NCBI GenBank assembly: GCA_009103225.1
Contig: RHPI01000026.1
Location: forward strand, 62,001 to 126,000
Source: Chlorokybus atmophyticus
Lineage: Eukaryota > Plantae > Mesostigma and Chlorokybus algae
DNA length: 64,000 nucleotides
Direction of reading: 5' to 3'
Positions 29,051-59,922 of this stretch are shown piece after piece. The notes under the pieces were generated by a model. That model ran no database searches. It worked only from the letters and a program-made list of their open reading frames with translations, and was not told the DNA's origin. The first letter of the stretch is position 1. The number at the start of each line of letters is the position of its first letter. The translations under genes and the position numbers were made by a program.

Positions 29051-30689
29051 TTACCCTGAGAAAAGGAAGGAAGAGGCAACATTTACTGCTGCACTGACAA
29101 CCTCACGAAAAGGGTTGCTCGCATAACCCTATGAAACCACAGACCTCTTGACCAATGTGCAGTACACAGTAGAGACAGCTACTGTAGATGCCCAAAACTA
29201 CCTATTGACGCTGAGTATTATTTCACTTGGTTTTGCATGGGACAACCTAGCCTCAAACGAGCTGCTTTCGACTTGTGATCTAGAGGCAGCAAGTAAACAA
29301 GCTCGCTGGCTCGTGTGCTAGAGACAACTCAACTCTGCCTGCGAAGGTCTTGCCCATCTCATGACTAAGATGTTGGCCGTAGTGGACTTGCGTGTGTGTA
29401 CCGCAGGAGTAAGGCATGTAACCAAGCGTTTGCGTTTGACTCGTTTTTGCTGCATGCGGGGGCATTGGTGAGTCTGAAGCAAGCTGTTGAACCAAACGCA
29501 CTGCATTGTGTACCAGCTACACTGTCAGAAAACACGAGCTGTGTCTAGCAGGCCAGCGCTGCTTTGCCTGCCAGCATGAAGACACAACGGGAGAGAGCAG
29601 CCAGCATGCTGACGGAAGCACAAGCAGTAACACCTCCGAGACCACTTTGCAGCAACACCCAACAAGACGACAGCAGTCTAAGGCCGCAGCCCATGACACC
29701 AGGCCAGCACGTACCAGGCCACGCCAAACCAAGCTGGAGCTTGCCAGCTTGCACTATTCACCACATGAGAACACCAGCTCCAGCCACTAGGAAGCGTTGT
29801 ACAGTACAATGCAAAGCTTTCCTCAGCCGACCTTCACCACGCAGCACACCGGCGGCGGCGACGACGGCGAGCCTCTCCCGCGCATGCGCCAAATTTGCAG
29901 AGTCAATTTTATTTCTGTGCTGAACGCTGAAGTGTTCTTTCCAGCCGCGGGGCGAGGAATAAATTATAAATACAAGTAAGCACCAAAGCGGTCGTCTAAA
30001 CGTACGAAATTTAACTTAGCCGCGGTTACGAATCGCCGGTTTAAGACATACCCGCGGTTACGCCTCCCGGCAATCTATTAACGGAAGGCAGTCAAAACAC
30101 GCCACCGCGGTTTAGCTTTGACTACGGTCTGGAGCGTCTGCCAAGTCCGACCCACTGACTTTACTGAGGTCCACATGGCGGGTGACGTGACGTCACAATG
30201 TACACCGCCCGTTACGTATCGCAGTTCAAAAAGCCGAGATGCGGTGTCTCAGGTACAGCGCCTCAGATACGCAGCGTTTTGTGCCGTAACGCGTCATCGT
30301 CCCAGTTCCAGCGCAATCCGTATTGCCCCGACTCGATACAGGAAACCAGTTTAGTACCCTTTTATGAACGTGGCAGACAAGCGTGAGCGTGGGAAACAGC
30401 CAAATGCCTGTGGCAACCGCCAGCTGTGATGTGTTGGGGATGATGTGACAAGCTGAAACAGCAAGTAGCACAATGAAACCCTAACTTGTTTCCAGTACTG
30501 TGTGCCTCAGAGGATAAGTACGGCGGTGACGGAGGCGGGGAGGACGTTGCTGGTGTCGGTGGCGGGGGATGTCTGGAGCGGCTTGGTGTTCTGGTGGCTT
30601 GCTCTGCGCGTCAGGAGAGAGGAGGTACAGCTGACATAGGAACGGGGTGGTCGTGTGTTCTGCGAGGAGGTTGTTTTGTTTCCACCGCG

Positions 30690-33266
30690 ATGGCGAGCGC
30701 CGGTGGGCGCATGACTGTGCACGTTAAAACCACTGCTGCTGGGGGAAAGTTCAGCGTTGAGGTGGAGGGATCGTTGACGGTTGCGGAGTTCAAGGCTCTG
30801 CTTGCAGACAAAAGCAGCGTGCCTGCACCGCAACAGCGCCTGATCTACAAGGGGCATGTTCTTAAGGACGATCGCACGCTAGCTTCCTATGGTAGGCCTC
30901 TTGCTTCCCTGCATTGATCTAAGTAGCACGCTAGTGCGTTTTAGTTGTGGTTGAAGAATTTGTAAAGTTCACTATGTCAATAGCAGTACAGCAAATGTTT
31001 GTCCTGAGGTTTTGTTTTCAACGACGTCACGTCAAGGCGTCTGTGTCTGCCACACGGGTGAGTCAAGTGCAGGACAACTTTTGCCTACTTGGAAGGTAGT
31101 TGTCCCCCATAGAGGTTTATATGCAACTCATGGTGTTCCGTGGCATGTCGCACTGTTTGAATAGGAAAGCCGTTTACCACTAGGGTTCCAGTCAGCCCAC
31201 AGAGCACACGTTATGAGTTCTGCAGGTGTTCAACAGTTGCTGTTGCAGATCGTGCTGTAGCATGCATGCATGGTTGGTACAAGTGGTTTGGTTGCAAATT
31301 ATTGTACTGCCATACTGTCCGCCTGTGCCTTTCACACGGTGTAGAACCTGCCTTGTTCAGAACACGATCTTACTTCAGTCTGTGACATGCTTGACTAGCT
31401 TTTCTAGTTAGAGCACTCCAGTCCAACACACTCGGATTACGTGTGGTCTGTTGCTTAGCGTGTTGCACTCAGGTTTGGAACACGAACACACGGTGCATTT
31501 GGTGAAGGGTGCAGCAAGGGACGAGAACAGCTCAGGTGCAGCGCCAAGCACGGCAACCAGCAGCACGGTGCCTGCTCCAGGGTTGGGCATTCCCAATGTG
31601 GCTGGGATGCCATTGGGTGCTGGTGGCGATATGGCTTCCATGCAGCAGCAGCTCCTCCCATTCCTTGAGAACCCTCAAAGCTTTCAGCAATTAGCTAACA
31701 GTCCGGCTGTGCAGGTGCGAATTGCAAGCATCCTGTTAGAGGGGTGTTAGTTACCAGTCTGTCCGAGCGTTGCGGAGTCTGTCCTGTTCTTTGCACTGAC
31801 TGTGGGTTCGTGTGCGTTCAGGCTGTGATGAATAACCCTGATATCATGCGCATGATAGTGAACAGCAATCCGCAATTACGAGAGATCATGGATCGCAATC
31901 CAGAGCTCGCGCACATTATGAACGACCCTAGCATATTGCGCCAAACACTGGAAGCTGCCCGCAACCCAGAGCTCATGCGCGAGATGATGCGAACCACAGA
32001 TCGTGCCATGAGCAACATTGAAGCACACCCGGAAGGCTTCAACGCATTGCGACGCATGTATGAGAATGTTCAGGTACTGTTGCTACAGTACTGATTACAT
32101 CTGCATGAGCATTTCACACCCTACAAGTGCTGCAAGTTAGCCATGGTGTCGCTTTGTGTATCGACTCCATTTGTTGCCAGGAGCCTATCATGAACTCCGC
32201 AACACAGGCTGCAGCAAATGCTGTGAACCGAGACAACCCATTCTCAGCATTATTTAACACGCCTGGCACGCAACCCGCTGCTACCCCGGTGCCGGCCCCA
32301 GGACCCAACCCCAACACAAACCCGCTGCCCAATCCTTGGAACCCTCGGCCAGCTGCCACTGCTCCAGCAGCTGGTACAGGTGCCACAGCACCTGCGCGTC
32401 CTGCAAGCAACACACCGAGTCCTTTTGGTCTCCTACCTGGCATGGGCGCTGGTATGCCAAGCATGGACACCCTTGGCATGGACCCCCAAGTGATGGGCCA
32501 GATGCTTCAAGATCCTGCCTACCAGCAAATGATTCAACAGGTGCACATACGAATCTTGCGCTCTCGCCTTTGCTGCGAGGGATTGCTTTGTAACCACTTG
32601 CTTCACGTTGGTGGTCGTGCAGGTGATGTCCAACCCGCAAGTCATGGAGCAAGTGTTGAATATGAATCCACAGATGCGGCAAATGATGGAATCCAATCCC
32701 ATGCTTAGCGACTTCATTAGGAATCCCGAGTTCTTACGCCAGATGAGCAATCCACAGTTCATACAGGTTGGTACTGGTGCTGCACAGGCTGGCTGCTAAT
32801 CTGATCATGCATCCTGATATACAAGTATTCATGCTTCTTTCACAGGCAATGCTGCAGCTTCAGCAAGCTCTTTCAAATGTGCAGGCTGTTGCACCAAACT
32901 TCCCATTGGCATTTGGGTAAGCAGACGAATGCTCTTTGATCAACGCATATGTTGTGGGCTCCAACTCATCTGACCTTATGCAGGACACCACTTGGAGGTG
33001 ATGCGGGTGCAGCTGCTGGCGGCTTGCCCGCTGCTGCTGGCGCCGCACCGCCCAACATGAATGCATTGTTGAGTACGCTGATGGGGGGCGGTCTTGGAGG
33101 TGCTGTCCCGCAACCAAATGTCCCTCCTGAGACGCTTTATGCCAATCAGCTCGCACAGTTGCAGGAGATGGGGTTCTTTGACACGCAGGCCAACATCCAA
33201 GCACTAGCGGCTTCAGGCGGCAATGTTCACGCTGCAGTAGAACAGTTGCTACAGAATCTTGGTTAG
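30690..33266 (+). CDS. DSK2: Ubiquilin/Dsk2 ubiquitin receptor (UBL-STI1-UBA)
   Basis: UBL ([21 protein letters not shown]|[12 protein letters not shown]), STI1 repeats ([42 protein letters not shown]) and UBA ([38 protein letters not shown]). Confidence 0.97.
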
Positions 33267-35196: not shown

Positions 35197-36659
35197 AGCC
35201 CCTCCCAAACTTCCTCGCACCGCATCAGGTGACCGGCTCGCTACCGCCAAAACAGTTCCTGTGCGTTTAACATATAAGGCCCCACCCCTGTTACGGCTTG
35301 CGACCCCTTGCAGGCGGTCCTTAAGAGGGGTGGGTCCTAAAAGTCTGTGCTGCGATGATGCACGAAGCCGAGATGCACGCGTGTCGAAAGCTGAGCAGCT
35401 GTCGCTGCTAGGCGGCTCCTTATAAGCATACGCTCATAAGTTCTATACAGTACAGCAACTTACGTTGTGTTATGCGCAATCACAGCCTGGTCAATAGCAC
35501 TGCTAGGTATGACAGCAGTGTTGAAGCAGCACAGCTCAAGTACCGGTAGATCTCGTACATGCAAGTCAATGTAGAAATGAGCCTCTTATAATGCCAATGT
35601 GAGATTTTAAGAGTCTCATCTCTATTTGCATGTGATTAATGGCTCTCAATTTAACTATATGCAAATTCAATGGCAAACACATTACATGGAAAAAAAAACC
35701 TTTCCTATACTATAGAATCCGCGTACCGCTGCCATGCTGCTATTCTGCCTGCCGAGTCCGCCTTACACTTTCACGCGCGTAAGCATTGGCCCCCCCCCTC
35801 AGCTATTGGAGAGAAGCATTAAAATCTACGAAATGCCGATAAGATTTCAAAAAGGGTCTTTAAGTTTGCGTGCACACTTCTGGCCATGTAAACACGGTAG
35901 GGTACATATGCTACCATATTTACCCTTATCATAAGCACGTGCTTGTTAATTACAAGAAGCCATAATCATATATTGAGAGATCGAATGCCTTATTTAGGGA
36001 AATTGCGAACAACGCAGGTGTAATTGAAATATTTAAGCTTTATTAAGCTAATCTAAGTTAGGGGGGCCAATGCTTACGCGCGTGAAAGTGTAAGGCGGAC
36101 TCGGCAGGCAGAATAGCAGCATGGCAGCGGTACGCGGATTCTATAGTATAGGAAAGGTTTTTTTTTCCATGTAATGTGTTTGCCATTGAATTTGCATATA
36201 GTTAAATTGAGAGCCATTAATCACATGCAAATAGAGATGAGACTCTTAAAATCTCACATTGGCATTATAAGAGGCTCATTTCTACATTGACTTGCATGTA
36301 CGAGATCTACCGGTACTTGAGCTGTGCTGCTTCAACACTGCTGTCATACCTAGCAGTGCTATTGACCAGGCTGTGATTGCGCATAACACAACGTAAGTTG
36401 CTGTACTGTATAGAACTTATGAGCGTATGCTTATAAGGAGCCGCCTAGCAGCGACAGCTGCTCAGCTTTCGACACGCGTGCATCTCGGCTTCGTGCATCA
36501 TCGCAGCACAGACTTTTAGGACCCACCCCTCTTAAGGACCGCCTGCAAGGGGTCGCAAGCCGTAACAGGGGTGGGGCCTTATATGTTAAACGCACAGGAA
36601 CTGTTTTGGCGGTAGCGAGCCGGTCACCTGATGCGGTGCGAGGAAGTTTGGGAGGGGCT
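35197..36659. repeat. Long inverted repeat: 599-bp arms (35197-35795 and 36061-36659) around a 265-bp AT-rich spacer
   Basis: The arms are reverse complements at every position I compared and have equal length. The left arm begins immediately after the single N at 35196. Confidence 0.95.
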
Positions 36660-36806
36660 TAGAGGGGCCTTTTTCTTCTGTTAGCATTTTTAAGACCGCG
36701 GTTTAAGACCGCGGCGCCTTACAAGGGGTCGCTAAAAGTCCTGTTCGTATAACTTGTAGGGTACCTCGTACTCCGCGGGGCCTTAAGAGGGGTCGCTAAA
36801 AGTCTG
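36509..36806. mobile_element. MITE-like ~300-bp foldback element with imperfect terminal inverted repeats
   Basis: Left end cagacttttaggacccacccctcttaagg versus right end ccttaagaggggtcgctaaaagtctg, with an extra internal motif copy at 36717-36740. No target-site duplication found. Confidence 0.5.
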
Positions 36807-37318
36807 CGCGTGCCGAGCCTTATTGCATCATGCATGACTCATGCAGCATGACGACAACTTCACCACTTCGCCGCGGCTCGGCGCCTTCACACCCGGGCCT
36901 CTGTGTTACGATGCCCGGCTGTAGTTCAGAGGGCTGCTTGTTGAACGCGCGTTCCTGGGCAGCGCCGTGCGACCGACCCCATCGTCTGGAAAAATCCGTC
37001 CACGTGACTGATTGTGATCTCCACTTTTCGACGGAAATAGTCACATAATGTCGTGCGATATGTAGTGGATATGCCGTCATCGCCCTCTGGCGACTTTATG
37101 TCTGTAGGGGTGCTTCTGGTCATTGCAAGCTAATGAGCACATAGCTGCGCGCCTCAACGCAATGCTTACGCAGACAAGCATTATCTAAATATCACATGAT
37201 ATACGCACATGCACTCAGTCGTGAACGTACAGGCAAGTACAAATAGTCTGAGTAGCTACGGTGCTGCACAAGGCTTCAACGATTGCAGTCTCTTAGTTTA
37301 ACCATTCCTCAGTCAGCC

Positions 37319-38404
37319 ATGGCTCGCTCCAGCCTCTGCCTCTCCGTGGCCTTGCTGCTCGGCCTCTGCGTCCTGCTTGGTGAGCTGATGCGTGTGACGC
37401 TGTCCTCAACATGCAAATGCCAACTGCTGCCTATGTGTTGTGAGCCTGCCTGCCTGCCTTGACGGCTTGTCTGCCCAACACCTGTTCAGCACTAGTCAGG
37501 CAGCTACTCAGTTCTGCTGCATGACTACACGCATGCATGCAAGCGTTGCACGCGTGAGAGGCCGCTGTGCACAATGCATGCACATGCACCTACACCCACC
37601 CACCTACCCACCCACCCAACGACAACTCTTCTAACACACTCTCTTCCTCAGGCAATGCTGGTGCTGCCAACGCCGAGGTCACACTCCACACTCGCCCCAA
37701 GTGGGCTCTCTGCACCGTGACTCCCTCCACCCCTTCCTCCACCTACTCCCTCTTCTTCCGTCCCCGCCTCTTCCTGGTGGACTCCGCCTCCCACACCCTC
37801 CTCGCCCGCGGCAAGTGCGTGCTGCGCATCACCAAGGCGTCGGGAGCTGTCGTGACGAAGCATGCCCAGTGCACGCTGAAAGTGAGTGCGATTATTGGAG
37901 GAGGAGATAGCAACGGGAGGAAGCTGCTGCAGGCGCCCCCGGCGATTTGCACGCTGATTACTGTCAAGATTCCCAAGGGAGTGAATATCAATGTGCTGGG
38001 ACTGAACATTGCCATCCCGTCTGGTCTCCGCGTGGTAAGAGACAGAAGAGTGAACTCTTTTTCGCTTGTGACTGCACATGTATACGGGTGCATGTGTGCA
38101 CTCATGTTGGTGGCTGTATACGTGTGTATGTATCAGCATGTGCGCATACGCGTATGCACACGTATGTGGGTACATGTCTGTGCGTGTGCATGTAACGTTG
38201 CATAGGTTGTAACTGTTGCTATACATGCGTTCTATGGTGCTTCCACCTTCTAACACTTGACACCTGCAGATCATCACGGGTACCGCTGGTTTGTTGGGCA
38301 ACCTCCTTTGCGATCTGAACGGTCTGCTGAGCGGTCTGAGCTTGACCAAGTTGCAGGCCATCGCCGACGCTTTGAACAACCTGCTGGCACAGCTTGGCGC
38401 TTAG
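37319..38404 (+). CDS. Secreted ~192-aa protein (signal peptide, beta-rich domain, RKLLQ motif, Leu-rich C-terminal domain) resembling an uncharacterised actinobacterial secreted family
   Basis: Exons 37319-37379, 37652-38034 and 38270-38404 are in phase. Signal peptide MARSSLCLSVALLLGLCVLLGNAGA. C-terminus CTLITVKIPKGVNINVLGLNIAIPSGLRV|IITGTAGLLGNLLCDLNGLLSGLSLTKLQAIADALNNLLAQLGA*. Confidence 0.85.
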
Positions 38405-39146
38405 GCTGCTGGCCATGCGTGAAGTGTGAACATTTTGTACTGAGAGATAGTGATAAAGCTGGTAGTTTGGCAAGAGGTCTTGTAACATGCAGGCTTGTTG
38501 TGGTTAATGGAGTTTGTATATGCGGTAGGAGTGTAGTGCAGTGTAGTTCATGAACTGGCGTCCGTTAGCAAATTGTGGAAACTGCTGAGATGTGGCATGG
38601 AGTATACTTTCTTTTTCCCGTTTTGGTTTCAACTTGACTTTTGGTTGGCTTAATGATGATGATTGTAACTTTGTACCTTTTGATAACAACCAGCCAACCA
38701 CAATATTTTACTCTTGGTATCAATGAGATCAAGCAAGCAGACACTTTGCATCACAATTTCACTTATCTCCTTGCAACTCACGTGCAAGTGCACAACCCGC
38801 CAAACAACACAAATATGTACCCAATCTTGTAGCAACAAAGATAGTGTGCCCTCAGGATCAACATCACACATCACGCGCCGGATTGTTGCAGTAATGTAAC
38901 AATACATTAGGTAGTGTGCACACGCTGTACACGCAAAGAAAGAGGTAGTAGCATATCACTCTTGCTGCAACAATACGATGTTGAAGGTTGGTACACTCTT
39001 GATATGGTGTGGTAGTGTACAGGTGTAACATTGGCTACCAGTTTTTGGACATCAGCTGCTGAGTTGTTGCACAGTTCAATGAATACTTTTGCCTTGTGGC
39101 GTTTTCAAGCTGACTGATTCTTGATTTCCTATTACAGAGTATATAA

Positions 39147-39330
39147 ATCACTTTGTATCACAAGCCAACAAGGAAACACTGCATATAAAAAGCACATTGT
39201 TCACCTTGTGTCACAGAAAACATTGATCACTTTGCATTACAAGCAGTCAACAAGGAAACACTGCACATAAAGAGCATATTGTTCACCTTGTGTCACAGGT
39301 ACTACTACATCAATTAACCAACAAGGAAAA
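39147..39330. repeat. Diverged ~79-bp tandem repeat (2 copies plus a partial) between two convergent genes
   Basis: atcactttg...caacaaggaaacactgca.ataaa.agca.attgttcaccttgtgtcacag occurs twice. Confidence 0.8.
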
Positions 39331-39512
39331 ACCGCATTATTGGTGGCAATAGCCACATATAAAGCATACACTTCGCATGCTTACACTTTAATGTAACCTA
39401 TTACACACCACTAACCCTACAGCTGACACGGTTCACAACACGTCAATCAATTAATCAATGCCTCTATCGCTACAGCCATATTCAATGCAAACAACGCAAC
39501 AACTCATCATGC

Positions 39513-42008
39513 TCACGCTTGTCGTGTGGCCGCATCATACGCTGCACGACACTCTTCAGGCAGCAACGCCTTGACCTCCATGACAGAAAATGATGGCTCA
39601 GGCAGTTTCTCAATGGCGGCCGCGCACACCTCCGGACGCAACTTCCACCTACGCAGCGTGCTCCTGTAGGACGGGATGGCGTCTAATGGGGGACCCCTCG
39701 CTGTGCAAGCCTGAGCAACAAAGCATGTTGTGAGTCCCACGCGTGCACACACACATACGTCACACAGAGGTAGCCAACGCAGGAACATGTGCATGTGGGT
39801 GGGTGGGTGCGCGCACGCATGTGTGTGTGCAAACAGTGCACACATGCATTCGGGCGCACTTGTGTGCGCATACGCCTGTGAGTGTTGACTTGTATGCAAG
39901 TCTGCACGCACACACATGCACATGTACGCACGCGCCCGCAAGCGCCTGTACAAACCAACATACCCAGTGATCGGTTCCAAGTCTGTGTAGGTAAAACCGC
40001 CACAGCGGTTGGTGTACGCCGTCGATCCAGACGCCAGCCCACTTCGCCCACACGTCGTCGCCGTCGTAGCGAAACTCCGCGCGGCACAGCGCAAACCCGA
40101 GCCCAGCACCAACCGCCTTCACGTAAGCCTCCTTCATCGTCCAGTACCTGTGACATGTAAACTCACACGTTGTCCACAGACTGTTGCTAAACCAAGGAGC
40201 TGCAAGCTTACACAGCTGTGCACATGCACACACTGCGGCAGTTGTGCATATCACTTCTTGAAGTCGCACAGACGCACACAAACGCACGCTCGCACGCACG
40301 CTTACTGTTAGTTGCCTAATATGTCTTTGACTGACATGGCGTCAAAAACTTGTGTGAGATACTTGTGCAAATGTGCGCTTCGCAATATGACAAGTAGCTA
40401 GCACTACACAGATACCCACCACCCACCTGTAGAACTGGTTCAGAAGTGCTTCATCCGAATCCGTTCCACCCGTCCTCATCGTCCTCCACTCCCGTTCCGT
40501 GAAGCAGTTCCTGAACGCTTCAATAAACGCCTCTGCCCCACTCTTCTTGCCAGAAGGAGCGTGTGACATGATGTCCGCGCCGGAGAGACACAGCGGCTCC
40601 GACGCGATCACCACGTAGTCGCCGTGGTGAGAAGCGTTGAAGTTGAAGTTGGGGAAGGGGCAAGAGGGGGGGAGGGGGGTGGCCTGTGGGTTGTGTGTGC
40701 TTTGAGAGGTGGCTGACAGAATCATGCTTGCTGGTTACTAAAGTCAGTTGTATACATGTGCGTGTGCGCGTGTGTGTGTGCATGTGCACACCCTCATGCG
40801 CACACAATGCGCGGGTGTGCGCATTCGCGTGCACGTATGTGTGCGTCTGTCTCAGCAACTCACCAGGAAGGGTTTGTTCTCGCGTGTGCGGCGGATGTCA
40901 ACGCGGTCGTACGGTATGCCCAGGACTTTATGGACAAGCTGACGCTGGAGCAGCCTTGACACCATTGCGCGCTTCCTGTCCTCCATCCTCATAAACCTGT
41001 TGAATTGCACGTTTGGTGAAGCACAACATGTGACAAACACACTCACAGGCACACCCACACACATACTTGCACATGCTAATGCTTTGCAATGAAGCTTACT
41101 TGATGCTCATGTTGTGTGTGTGTGTTGAAGCACAACAACACACGCACACGCGCACGCTCACGCTTGAATCATACCCTCTAGCAATCATACCGCCACCCAC
41201 ACCTACACCTACACTCACTCTCACTCTCGCGCTTACTTGTTGACTTGCTCTGTTTCGGCCTGGTCGAGCAACGACAAGCAGAGCTTCCACTCAGTGTCGC
41301 CGGGCTGCCAGGTCGCCGTGTTGACCGCCCAGCGCTGAACGCCCTCGGACATGACTGCCATGTCAACCTCACTGAGGTCGAGGTCGTCGGCTTCTTCAAA
41401 AGCAGCCTTGCCCACCACTGAAGACAACATACATATGTGTATGTTTGGTGTTGTGTGTATGCGTGTATATTTTGGGTTGTGTATCTCACTCTGCTGGCAA
41501 GCATTTTGGTAGTGGTGGCAATACCTGACTTGCTGGCTGCAAATGTGTGTGAGATGGAAGCTCAATGCAGACAACGCAAGTTGCATGGACGCAAAGAGTA
41601 CGTGCTGTGCAGCTCATGCACGCATGCTTGTATGGAATAGAATGCTTGCAACTGTGGAAGCGAGTGAAAAGACCAACCTGAGTGTGAAGGAGCGTGGTCA
41701 TGCTGCTGAGGTAGGGCGCCTAGCGGCCACACTTGTCTCGCCATGCTTGAGCACCGCTCGTAGTTGCTGTCGTAAGCTAGCGCTTCGTCAGGCAGCAGAA
41801 CAAGAGGGTCGTCCTCGACCTCGTCCTCGTCCTCCTCCTGCTCCTCTTTCTCCTGCTCAGCCTTATGGCTGTGCTTATCCTCCGCAGCGATATGCTGCAG
41901 GGCGGGCTTAAGCACTTCAATGCTGCTGCTGCTGCTGCCATGCTGGCAGTCTGATACTACCGGCACCGTACCTTCCGCTGCTACCTCGTGCCTCCACGTG
42001 GCGAGCAT
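39513..42008 (-). CDS. Sfp/AASDHPPT-type 4'-phosphopantetheinyl transferase, with a possible acidic N-terminal extension
   Basis: EGVQRWAVN, RFMRMEDRKRAMVSRLLQ, RTRENKPFL, FNFNASHHGDYVVIASEPLCLSGADIM, YRYWTMKEAYVKAVGAGL. The start at 42008 is tentative; the core could begin at MSEGVQRW near 41350. Confidence 0.9.
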
Positions 42009-45152: not shown

Positions 45153-47565
45153 TCACAGCGTGTTGGTGTTGAGTGCAGCGGCGGGCTGTTCAAACTCGGG
45201 GAGTGCGGTCATCATCTCCTTCTTGACGAAGGCCGACAGCTGCCAGGACGCCAGCTCGAAGGCCACGAAGGCCGCCGCGTTCGTTGGGAACGCGCGCAGG
45301 ATCGCGGGGACGAAACCGGCGTAGAGACCACGTACACCGGAAGTCCTCGCCAACTGTTCACACGCATATATACACATGAACGTTGTTATGCTGTGTTGTT
45401 GCAATGTCCAGACGCAATTGAGTTGTGCATACGCTGGCGTGCAACAACATCCTGATCTCATGCCTCATGTGTGGTGTTTAGATCAAAAGGTGCTTACTAA
45501 CAAATCAACGAGTAGTAAAGGCATCATATGTAGGGTTGCAATGATGTGGTGGTGAATGTGGCAAGCAGCACATACCACATGGAGCTGTTGGAAAACGGTC
45601 CCCCGTGCAGCGCCCGCGATGGCCTCGGTCTGTATCCTGGTCTTGATGACATCAACTGGCAACACTATCGCCCAGAACTGCACATCGTGCGATGATGTCA
45701 ACTATGCATTCAAGGTGTCAAGTAAATATAAGTGCCCGCATAGGCATGCGGGCACTGATCACGCACAGCATCCTACACGAATTCGCACAAATGTAGACGC
45801 ACGCACGCAAGAAGACACACGCGCCATACGTGCACGCACAGGCACAGGCACAGGCATGCGCGCTTGAACACACGAACACGCACACGCACACGCACACGCA
45901 CACTGGCACATGCACGCACACACGCATGCACGATACACAAGCGAGACATCCACTCTCAACATGGTGAACTCTCCACTCACCGCTACCCCAGCGAGTCCCC
46001 CCGATACCACCGCCGCCGCCCCCTCCACCGCGACCTTCCTCGCCGTGATACTGCTATCTGCGCGGTCGGCCTCCGTCGCGCCGAGCCAGCGGGCGACGCG
46101 AGGCCGCAGCGCCTCGTACGACGCGAAGTAGGCCACGTTGCCGGGGGACTCGCGGAGGACCGTCGCCCCAAAACCTCTGAACAAGCCACGGACCTGGGGG
46201 ACAACATGACAGGATCACACTGATGGTACTGTAAGACAACACGCAAGGCATCTCAGCAACACAGTGTTGTGTATACTGTTTTTTGCTGGGCAAGGCACAT
46301 CATCGAACATATCAGCAGTATGGTCTGGTGAGCATACTCCAAGATCGAGTGGTAATGAAAGAAGTCGCACGCTGATCGGCAAGTATTGGGCTTGATGCAA
46401 GGTTTTAGTTCCATCAGTATGCATGCAGATATTCGATACAACACACGTGCGCACGCTTACCCCCTCTGTGGCGACGGTCTTGCGCACAACGTCCATGGCG
46501 CCGCCGTACCCCGCGCCTCCCATGCCCACTTGCATCCGACACTGGAAGGAAAAATCCTCAATTGCAACCCAACATTGTTACAAGTAATGGGAATGGACAA
46601 GGAGAACTAGTGTCTTACCTTCACGAGCTCCACAGGCGTGAGTATGCCCGCCACCGCTGCACCAGCGGCCGCGCCACCCAGAGCGACAGCCTTCCAACTG
46701 GTCGTGCCGTCCTTGTTGGCCTGTACGTAAGTCAGTGTTTGAGTTATGCTGTTATGCATGTAGTACACATCTTTTGTTGGGATGACATGTTGTGTGTGCG
46801 TGTGAATATGCTCCCATACGCAAACGCATGCATCGCGCTTGTCCATACCTGTGCGCAGCACGCGCACACCCACACATGTTCATGTTTGTATAAGTGCACA
46901 CGCACGCACGCACGCGCACCCACTCATGCAAGTGTCACGTGAGTGTTTCAGCGTACACGCACACATACACACACAAATGCAAGCGCGCGCACGCATGCAC
47001 ACTTACCCTTGTGTGCATACATTCTCGCATGCGCGCACTTATACATCACTATCATCTGCTGAACCAACAAGATCCGCATCCTGAATGACAGTTTCCAACC
47101 TCTCCACTCACCGGCAGTGCCTTCTTCACGCCGCTGTACACAGCAAACAGCACCGCATTCTCCAACGGCGATCCTATCAACGGGGAGGAGGCGCCCCTGT
47201 ACAAACCCCGCACCTGCAACCAAAAACAGCGTGCATGACGTCAAACGACTTGTTTGTAAACAAGAAACAGCTGCCAACACAGTAACACAACATAGCATAA
47301 CACAAGCGTACCCCTTCGTGACGCATGATGTCCGTGAAACAGTGCCACAAGCCTCGGTACTGCCGTCTAGCCGCTTGCGACTGCAACCGAACCTGATTTC
47401 ACATCGAGTGTCAATACACAAATCAAGTCTAACAACCATCCAACGGATTAGCACAAACAATACGATACGCACCTTGCAGGTGTCGAAAGGGTGGCCGGCG
47501 GCGACGCTGGCCACGCCGGCAGCCACGCCAGCGGCGAAATCGGCGAACCCTTGAGACATCACCAT
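45153..47565 (-). CDS. Mitochondrial carrier (SLC25), basic amino acid/ornithine-carnitine carrier clade, BAC1-like
   Basis: Three PX[DE]XX[KR] signatures: GHPFDTCKVRLQ, LTPVELVKCRMQ and LPVDVIKTRIQ. Also GLYAGFVPAILRAFPTNAAAFVAFE. Confidence 0.92.
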
Positions 47566-56898: not shown

Positions 56899-57698
56899 AG
56901 TCTAGATAGACCAGATGAGGACTGCCTTGCAAGGGGATTCTCTGTTGTGTCATACATTCTTTGGCTGATGGAACAATGAGTTGTGAGGTAGTTGATGGCT
57001 ATGTAGCAAGTCGCCAGTGTCTGTGTGAAATTGGTAGGGTGTGATCGTGCAGAAAATGAAGGTGGCTCTGTGCTGGCACAGTTCCCCTTCAAGTTGCGAC
57101 CGCTTCGTCAGTTGATGGCACGAGTTTGGTTATCAGAGTGTGCACATCATGCTGCTTGTATTGCATCTTCAATGTTGTTATGAGCCAAGGATGGATGTGC
57201 TGGTGGTGGCTGGGATTCCATTCAGTACGTCCAATATGCCGACAATGACTCTTCATGAGTGTCATGTCCATATTGAGTGAGAGGCCGTTATAGATAAGAC
57301 TGCAAGGTATCATGTGTTAGCAAACAATAAGGGCATCGCTATTGTTTGTTCAGATGTTATATGAATGCCATGAGAAAGATCTGCGTGTGTCCGCACATGA
57401 CACCAACGACCTATGTACCAAGCTCTCATCTGCACATGACACTAACAATAGATGCTGAACTAAGATGTAACACTCTACGAGTACCGCGAGTACCAATGTA
57501 CTATACAGGCAGCAACTTATGCTGTTGAATCGCAATCGTGACACACTCCGTTACCACCTCAGGACTTGAAGACAGACCGGGTAACAGTGGTGCACTCTTT
57601 TACAAGGCCAGCATTATAGAAAATCGAAAAGGAGAACTCCCCTGCCAGTAGTGTTTGATACACTAGCATACACGCCTTGCTGTGCACAACAGTCCGAC

Positions 57699-57730
<32 letters not shown>

Positions 57731-58092
57731 NNNNNNNNNNNNNNNNNNNNNNNNNNNNNNNNNNNNNNNNNNNNNNNNNNNNNNNNNNNNNNNNNNNNNN
57801 NNNNNNNNNNNNNNNNNNNNNNNNNNNNNNNNNNNNNNNNNNNNNNNNNNNNNNNNNNNNNNNNNNNNNNNNNNNNNNNNNNNNNNNNNNNNNNNNNNNN
57901 NNNNNNNNNNNNNNNNNNNNNNNNNNNNNNNNNNNNNNNNNNNNNNNNNNNNNNNNNNNNNNNNNNNNNNNNNNNNNNNNNNNNNNNNNNNNNNNNNNNN
58001 NNNNNNNNNNNNNNNNNNNNNNNNNNNNNNNNNNNNNNNNNNNNNNNNNNNNNNNNNNNNNNNNNNNNNNNNNNNNNNNNNNNNNNNNNNNN
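57731..58092. other. Assembly gap (N run)
   Basis: N run preceded by poly-G. Confidence 1.
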
Positions 58093-59182
58093 ACTGTGTT
58101 GGGGGGGCAGGAGAGGGAGAGGGAGAGCTGTGCTAGCGGATCAGTCATCCCCGCAGCATTCCTGCTAATGCTACCTTACTGACTGCTGCTATCGCTCACC
58201 TCCATCTCTCTTCTCGGCCAGATGTTACCCAGGGCTTCTACCAGGCATGCCCTTGACCAAACTCCCTTGCCACAACATGCGCCGGCAACACTTGAAGCGC
58301 ATCGTTGACCTGACTGTACAAGCGTTCGAGCGCAGTTCGTAAACCAGCAGTTGAGCAACTCCTGTTTTGCGGCAAGTCATCATGCAATAGAGAACATGCT
58401 CGGTGTCGAAGACATGTGCCATGAGCTCCATGGTGGAGCACAACACAAGTAGCTCAAAGCTCACGAAAGTTGCTTCTGTTGGTGCTTGCTCTCTCAAGCT
58501 ATGTGACCTCAGACCCGACTCCTAACTTGCAGGTGCTTCAGCACCCTACACCCTTACTCGTGCGAGACATTCCCTTGATGCACTCAATGAAGACCAGGCT
58601 GTGCTAAATACCGCTGCTTTAGCAACGCACCTTAGTGCAATAAAGCAACTGTTTCCGCCCAAGGCACAAAGGAAACAACTTCTGCGCAGTCAGAAGTTGC
58701 TTCCATTCGTGTTTAAACGAAAACAACTCTCTGATGATGCGAAGGTGCGTTGCAGAAGGAGCGGTAAACAGCAGAACCTCTTCCTCCACGAGTCATCAAC
58801 GGGAATGTCTCACAAGTGAGGACAAAGGGCGCCCAGCGCCTGCGGATTGGAGTTGGGTTTGGGTCATGTAGACAAGGCCGCAACCAACAACAACAGCAGC
58901 TTGATGTGAGTTGACCTTAAGTTGACCGCATTGTGCTCACCACCGAACTCATGCCACGTATCTTATCAGCACCGAGCATATTACCGCATGATGAACGGCA
59001 CCATAACGGAAGTTGCAGCTGTTGGCGGTCGTACTTTATGTTCGCTTGTCTAATGAGGTTAACGATACACAGCTGTGAGCATGTTTACTTGGACAACACG
59101 TCCCACCACAGCATTCTCATCCAATCATGTACAGCTGCAACACAGCAATGGTCCACACGTGCTGCACGAGTGCACAAGTCGG

Positions 59183-59183
<1 letters not shown>

Positions 59184-59220
<37 letters not shown>

Positions 59221-59874
59221 NNNNNNNNNNNNNNNNNNNNNNNNNNNNNNNNNNNNNNNNNNNNNNNNNNNNNNNNNNNNNNNNNNNNNNNNNNNNNNNN
59301 NNNNNNNNNNNNNNNNNNNNNNNNNNNNNNNNNNNNNNNNNNNNNNNNNNNNNNNNNNNNNNNNNNNNNNNNNNNNNNNNNNNNNNNNNNNNNNNNNNNN
59401 NNNNNNNNNNNNNNNNNNNNNNNNNNNNNNNNNNNNNNNNNNNNNNNNNNNNNNNNNNNNNNNNNNNNNNNNNNNNNNNNNNNNNNNNNNNNNNNNNNNN
59501 NNNNNNNNNNNNNNNNNNNNNNNNNNNNNNNNNNNNNNNNNNNNNNNNNNNNNNNNNNNNNNNNNNNNNNNNNNNNNNNNNNNNNNNNNNNNNNNNNNNN
59601 NNNNNNNNNNNNNNNNNNNNNNNNNNNNNNNNNNNNNNNNNNNNNNNNNNNNNNNNNNNNNNNNNNNNNNNNNNNNNNNNNNNNNNNNNNNNNNNNNNNN
59701 NNNNNNNNNNNNNNNNNNNNNNNNNNNNNNNNNNNNNNNNNNNNNNNNNNNNNNNNNNNNNNNNNNNNNNNNNNNNNNNNNNNNNNNNNNNNNNNNNNNN
59801 NNNNNNNNNNNNNNNNNNNNNNNNNNNNNNNNNNNNNNNNNNNNNNNNNNNNNNNNNNNNNNNNNNNNNNNNNN

Positions 59875-59922
<48 letters not shown>

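Follow-up and report, generated by a model that had tools for sequence, protein, structure and literature searches.

A candidate bacterium-derived gene for a small, predicted secreted protein in the streptophyte alga Chlorokybus atmophyticus

Current views of plant adaptation to land include the capture of soil-bacterial genes by early-diverging streptophyte algae, and intron-bearing genes of bacterial origin are a known kind of gene in these organisms. Glycine-zipper helices are built from small-xxx-small repeats. In land plants, RKLL and RRLL are subtilase processing motifs of pectin methylesterases, as in AtPME17, which is cut by SBT3.5 (PMC7694680). Elements recalling both of these systems occur in a candidate gene of Chlorokybus atmophyticus, which lies in a 64,000-nucleotide stretch of DNA (contig RHPI01000026.1 of assembly GCA_009103225.1, positions 62,001 to 126,000 of the forward strand), referred to below as the window. 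An earlier note on this DNA, made from the letters alone, had proposed that the gene encodes a secreted protein acquired from a bacterium, and that proposal is assessed here.

The candidate gene consists of three exons on the + strand (37319-37379, 37652-38034 and 38270-38404 of the window), which together encode ~192 residues. The predicted protein is very probably homologous to a family of secreted bacterial proteins, of which it would be a highly divergent member, and this relationship is well supported. The gene was most likely acquired by the algal lineage from a bacterium, a conclusion that is well supported, if unproven. As an overall explanation we consider it probable that this is a captured and diverged member of the family, which is secreted, non-enzymatic and acts as a whole. 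The features of the locus, in window coordinates, are as follows (GC, guanine plus cytosine content; GC3, GC at third codon positions; nt, nucleotides).

37319-37379, + strand: exon 1, with the ATG at 37319, encoding MARSSLCLSVALLLGLCVLL plus the first base of a Gly codon; GC3 0.90.
37380-37651, + strand: intron 1, 272 nt, GTGAGC...CCTCAG, phase 1; GC 0.56, below that of the exons.
37652-38034, + strand: exon 2, with 127 whole codons from 37654, covering the mature N-terminus, the N-half beta region, the linker and the first strands of the C-module.
37732-37890, + strand: N-half beta-hairpin region PSSTYSLFFRPRLFLVDSASHTLLARGKCVLRITKASGAVVTKHAQCTLKVSA, matching the bacterial F..F....G.L.A.G.L.G.
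37918-37929, + strand: RKLL codons AGG AAG CTG CTG, in the linker and in or beside an insertion (inserted residues gdsngrk) relative to the bacterial profile.
37936-38034, + strand: exon-2 strands of the C-module, PPAICTLITVKIPKGVNINVLGLNIAIPSGLRV, with LGL and the hydrophobic alternation retained.
37948-37950, + strand: first family cysteine (TGC) at the start of the C-module, aligned with the invariant Cys column (C102 of bacterial member L021).
38035-38269, + strand: intron 2, 235 nt, GTAAGA...CCTGCAG, phase 0; GC 0.47; it interrupts the fourth strand of the C-module.
38270-38404, + strand: exon 3, 44 codons and TAG, covering the end of strand 4, the LLGNLLC helix and the C-terminal LNNLL helix.
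38291-38329, + strand: LLGNLLCDLNGLL motif, with the second family cysteine at 38309-38311 and a small residue at each fourth position (A-G-C-G-G).
38481-38485, + strand: TGTAA, 77 nt 3' of the stop codon, a possible polyadenylation signal of the green-algal type.

The bacterial family was recovered with a degenerate DNA pattern for LLGNLLCxxxGLL, a motif taken from exon 3, among one genome per bacterial or archaeal species. At least 120 bacterial loci matched the pattern, and ~103 of the 124 matching open reading frames (ORFs) belonged to one family, which was set as alignment A1. Its members are secreted and measure 170-230 aa, and almost all of them begin with a signal peptide; the consensus of A1 reads ...FxGTFxxxxFxxxxGxLxAxGxLxGT...CxILxLxLGPLDLDLLGLxVxLxxVxLDITAxxGAGNLLGNLLCAVAGLLDG...LLNxxLGxL. 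This is nearly letter for letter the consensus given in the earlier note, and the family does exist in bacteria. It is also large; among 8000 candidates scored in a profile search, at least 7612 clusters (90% identity) belonged to it.

The algal exons were scored separately, the profile, fold and tree steps being performed exon by exon and residue composition being counted over both pieces. Against a hidden Markov model (HMM) of the 103 members, exon 2 scored 16.7 bits over profile positions 44-127 and exon 3 scored 24.5 bits over positions 139-181; the two matches, each obtained from its own piece, are adjacent and collinear on the family profile. Composition-preserving shuffles did not reach the real profile score for either exon (0/20000 for exon 2 and 0/20000 for exon 3), and in a six-frame scan of the 64-kb window the exon segments ranked first and second among 999 (E 5.5e-7 and 5.6e-4; 0.11 for the third-ranked segment). 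Alignment of exon 3 to the family with hhalign gave a probability of 95.7% (P 8.9e-9) and placed it at the end of the profile. Both invariant family cysteines, the invariant LGL and the hydrophobic strand alternation are kept in the algal protein. The claim that both halves and the Cys pair match the bacterial family, as put forward in the earlier note, is therefore borne out by the collinear profile alignment.

Several results weigh against family membership or against a bacterial origin of the gene. The score of exon 3 is partly circular, as the family was fished with the exon 3 motif. Three sub-tests free of that motif were run to avoid the circularity, and these count in favour of membership: the N-half of exon 2 scored 12.2 bits against an HMM of the bacterial N-halves, a weak match (3/20000 shuffles as high), the C-part of exon 2 scored 7.5 bits against an HMM of the C-module (23/20000 shuffles as high) and exon 3 with its ten motif residues masked scored 5.8 bits (13/20000 shuffles as high), each corresponding to a P of about 1e-3 to 1e-4. 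With hhalign, exon 2 aligned to the family in the same way although weakly (P 0.0078, probability 5%), and the 33-residue C-part of exon 2 on its own was not significant. Identity between the algal protein and bacterial members is 14-29% over 76-84 columns for exon 2 and at most 57% for exon 3. A phmmer search of exon 2 against 1.84 billion representative proteins found no true relative, the bacterial members being missed as well at E <= 0.001. In a tree of exon 2 only (84 columns) the algal branch had a length of 1.91 changes per column (median 0.17) and was placed beside some Actinomycetota without support; neither identity nor this tree singles out a donor phylum. Lastly, no annotated or transcript-derived protein with exon 2 was found in two protein collections, from which the gene is apparently missing, and it may be unannotated.

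A chance or convergent likeness between Leu/Gly-rich amphipathic sequences could be read into the simple composition of the motif region and into the weak hhalign result for exon 2 and the non-significant one for its C-part. However, shuffles never reach the real scores, and three independent pieces, correctly ordered and spaced, each pass at ~1e-3 to 1e-4. We regard this explanation, together with that of bacterial contamination, as highly improbable. Contamination is excluded because the gene has two spliceosomal introns and a host-like composition, and because intron-bearing eukaryotic genes stand on both sides of it on the same contig. The earlier note had already held the introns and the algal neighbours against contamination, and the GT-AG borders of the introns, the GC3 of the exons and the split eukaryotic genes nearby are all in agreement with this.

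The algal protein resembles the members of A1 (for example P0083, P0097, L021, L011, L014 and L056) in its signal peptide, its length, its N-half hairpins, its Cys and Leu-alternating strands with LGL, its LLGNLLC helix and its terminal LLN.IL helix, all in the same order and at the same spacing. It differs from them in having introns, a separate exon for the signal peptide and three extra cysteines in the N-half, in its longer linker with RKLL, in the replacement of the near-invariant GP by KG, in strand Asn where the family has Asp, and in a GAGN turn that is two residues shorter.

All motif strings quoted in the earlier note were located in the sequence, as were the signal peptide and the two introns that it described, both introns being of the GT-AG type. 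Exon 1 is signal-peptide-like by inspection (predictor-free), with a basic n-region (MARSS), 15 hydrophobic residues and then GNAGAANA; scored against the bacterial family profile it gave -2 bits and shows no similarity. Exon 2 carries FRPRLFLVDSASHTLLARGKCVLRITKASGAVV, GGGDSNGRKLLQAPPA and C-T-L...INVLGLNI, and exon 3 carries GLLGNLLCDLNGLL...LQAIADALNNLL. The join LRV|IITG across intron 2 rebuilds the L.V.L.IT strand of the family at the correct spacing, and the C-terminal helix in exon 3, which reads LQAIADALNNLLAQLGA followed by the stop codon, corresponds to the L..LLN.IL helix of the family, where the protein likewise soon ends. The locus thus appears to encode an intact nuclear gene for a small protein, whose entry into the secretory pathway is predicted from the signal peptide.

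The GC3 of the exons (0.75-0.90) may be compared with 0.59-0.88 in neighbouring coding exons and with a GC of 0.47-0.56 in the introns, while the bacterial homologues have a median GC of 0.69. These values also bear on the possibility that only a relic of a transferred gene, silent or in decay, is left at this locus, with a reading frame still open by chance. The missing annotated or transcript-derived protein in the two collections searched, the very long branch and the alteration of the family GP and of several Asp positions would all fit a relic. However, all three exons are open, their canonical splice sites bring the sequence on both sides of intron 2 into register with the family, both cysteines, LGL and the hydrophobic alternation are retained, the signal peptide is intact and exon GC3 exceeds intron GC. 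A relic therefore seems rather unlikely, and an intact gene is the preferred reading.

The neighbours of the gene are a ubiquilin gene with ubiquitin and UBQLN1 domains (window 30486-32700, + strand, domains at ~30.5-32.1 kb) and a gene for a 4'-phosphopantetheinyl transferase of the AASDHPPT/ACPS type (window 39500-41600, - strand, exons at 39.8-40.7 kb), with a mitochondrial carrier gene at window 45760-46180 (- strand). Introns with many CA/TG repeats interrupt all three. An 82-bp unit occurs about twice in tandem at window 39147-39325, between the 3' end of the candidate gene and the phosphopantetheinyl transferase gene. Runs of N, representing assembly gaps, lie at window 57650-58180 and 59200-59920, edged by poly-G and GA/CT microsatellites, and account for the apparent low-GC bins at 56-60 kb. 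No paralogue of the gene was found within the 64-kb window, the antisense ORFs over the locus gave no family match and no Rfam match was obtained in 36000-39500.

Direct searches with the algal exons yielded little. Exons 2 and 3 matched nothing in Pfam or NCBIfam, and exon 2 matched nothing among the Protein Data Bank (PDB) sequences and found no relative among metagenome contigs. No match, not even to its own protein, came from a word-indexed search with exon 2 as query against 5.8 billion clusters, and an Atlas search gave sub-threshold leads only (0.79 and 0.75). The single phmmer match of exon 2, P0001, was rejected as a chance match inflated by repeats, its E-value being the sum of three identical matches, each of 30 residues and 32 bits. 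P0001, which is 408 aa long and built from 58-aa tandem repeats, is encoded on a 95-Mb contig of GCA_019279435.1 (L121); it shares F...SASH.L.ARGKC with exon 2 (14/30 residues), and the 9-of-12 core is striking.

The taxonomic range of the family is broad. Of the 103 members, 81 are from Actinomycetota, counting those of Rubrobacter, Solirubrobacter and Acidimicrobiia, and the remainder come from Chloroflexota, Acidobacteriota, Gemmatimonadota, Bacteroidota, Bacillota, Myxococcota and Planctomycetota among others, giving at least 10 phyla overall. Many are from metagenome-assembled genomes (MAGs) of soil, and the family is also present in a single cyanobacterial MAG (Coleofasciculus, L087) and a single MAG of Melainabacteria (L070). 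The family members among the named matches are all bacterial, as are 100% of the Atlas clusters of the family among those listed.

The direction of transfer, from bacterium to alga, is favoured because the family is broad in bacteria whereas a single eukaryotic copy was found. A bacterial gene would have entered the algal lineage and later acquired two spliceosomal introns, the codon usage of the host and an exon for a eukaryotic signal peptide. The alternative is vertical inheritance, or inheritance from the ancestor of the plastid, with loss or divergence beyond recognition in other eukaryotes. The extreme divergence of the algal copy means that other eukaryotic copies could evade phmmer, and the presence of the family in the two MAGs of Coleofasciculus and Melainabacteria also speaks for this reading. 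However, phmmer found no eukaryotic relative of exon 2 among the 1.84 billion proteins (a search that missed the bacterial members also), the named matches and Atlas clusters are bacterial throughout, P0001 being a chance match, and Actinomycetota and other soil phyla, rather than cyanobacteria, dominate the family. Vertical descent is thus judged decidedly unlikely. As for the horizontal acquisition claimed in the earlier note, the bacterial family, the collinear match and the integration into the host genome all speak for it, while the placement of the algal protein in the 84-column tree, where nesting within a bacterial clade would show, is unsupported.

Searches with the bacterial family itself found no relative in Pfam, NCBIfam or the PDB sequences, and no cluster from the profile search contained a Pfam domain; a literature search for the family motif string found no paper. 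Named matches carry either the label 'hypothetical protein', as does P0097 (Micromonospora auratinigra), or 'ABC transporter substrate-binding protein', as does P0083 (Nocardioides sediminis). The transporter label looks like a propagated misannotation, as it is unsupported by the sequence, the structural model or the gene neighbourhood. This neighbourhood is not conserved in bacteria, where the gene stands alone in unrelated surroundings. In a Rubrobacter MAG (L117) two family genes lie side by side (917-1510:+ and 106-642:+, E 2.7e-41 and 2.5e-51), and weak second family matches adjoin the main gene in six other loci.

In the bacterial members the N-half is invariably accompanied by the C-module, and neither was seen without the other. 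Whole units may be repeated: L108:5342-6274:- consists of two complete N+C units in tandem and L105:1043-3844:+ of about five to six, and two-unit proteins of ~310 aa are common among the metagenomic matches. Because the two parts are always paired and whole N+C units are duplicated in tandem, they appear to form one folding unit. An AlphaFold2 (AF2) model of bacterial member L021, made with alignment A1, has a mean predicted local distance difference test (pLDDT) score of 79, with four long strands spanning residues 37-94 (pLDDT above 92), followed by four short ones at 101-133 and by helices at 139-153 and 157-171. The C-module modelled alone gave the same elements as in the whole model. No convincing fold match was obtained with the whole L021 model (Foldseek best E 0.1; VIA best Z 4.9, a generic sheet only) or with the C-module model alone (best Z 3.0). 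By comparison with this model, the algal protein would fold as one unit, in which a beta-meander of four strands is followed by four short strands with alternating Leu and by a helical hairpin; the conserved Cys pair probably bonds the first helix to the first short strand.

Small residues (G/A, G, C, G) recur at every fourth position of the first helix, in the bacterial members as well as in the algal protein. As in glycine-zipper helices, the pattern G/A-x3-G-x3-C-x3-G(-x3-G) lies on one face; unlike them, it belongs to a soluble, secreted protein, the central position is a conserved Cys and the face probably lies against the sheet and not within a membrane. Cys, Leu, Gly, Pro, Asn, Ile and Ala are the residues conserved in the family; none of them is of a catalytic type, and for this reason the protein is somewhat more probably than not a non-enzymatic extracellular binding or interface protein. 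Such a protein would bind or coat a hydrophobic ligand, surface or membrane outside the cell. A surface, wall or microbe-interaction role for the algal protein, as suggested in the earlier note, is pure conjecture.

The RKLL tetrapeptide of the algal linker raises the question of processing. The earlier note had named R[RK]LL as a processing motif of green plants, and RKLL is indeed documented for land-plant subtilases (PMC7694680). Placed on the bacterial model, the motif falls in the loop between strands E82-94 and E101-109, where it would be exposed. As in the pro-region of land-plant pectin methylesterases, it lies in a linker joining two parts of a secreted protein. However, the algal protein has no pectin methylesterase (PME) or PME inhibitor (PMEI) domain and belongs to an early-diverging alga, its RKLL is a candidate cleavage site, and the regions on either side of it seem to make up a single fold, not an inhibitor and an enzyme.

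A host-evolved R[RK]LL site for a subtilase or site-1 protease (S1P) might release the Leu-rich C-terminal module, starting QAPPAIC..., as an extracellular product. The position of the motif in the linker, within or beside an insertion relative to the bacterial profile, is consistent with this, as are its documented use by land-plant subtilases and a chance expectation for R[RK]LL of only 0.0185 in a protein of this composition. On the other side, this is a single tetrapeptide noticed post hoc, linker length differs widely among the bacterial members in any case, and halves that are never apart in bacteria and are duplicated as whole units suggest one fold. Release at RKLL is accordingly considered unlikely, and the protein probably acts as a whole and not as a released C-terminal peptide. 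A more elaborate version, in which a captured one-piece bacterial protein was fitted with a plant-type subtilase site and either matures to two chains or frees a disulfide-stapled, glycine-zipper amphipathic module that acts on the membranes or surfaces of neighbouring microbes, is very unlikely. If true, it would represent an early streptophyte case of a bacterial protein made into a protease-activated extracellular effector.

If the transfer holds, a small secreted protein would be added to the genes of bacterial origin in streptophyte algae. What the present case adds to this known kind of gene is its source, a family that is huge and uncharacterised. With its sharply conserved, presumably disulfide-stapled motif and its occurrence mostly in soil, the bacterial family merits a name and a function, and the algal copy would offer a second, eukaryotic system in which the function of the family may be probed.

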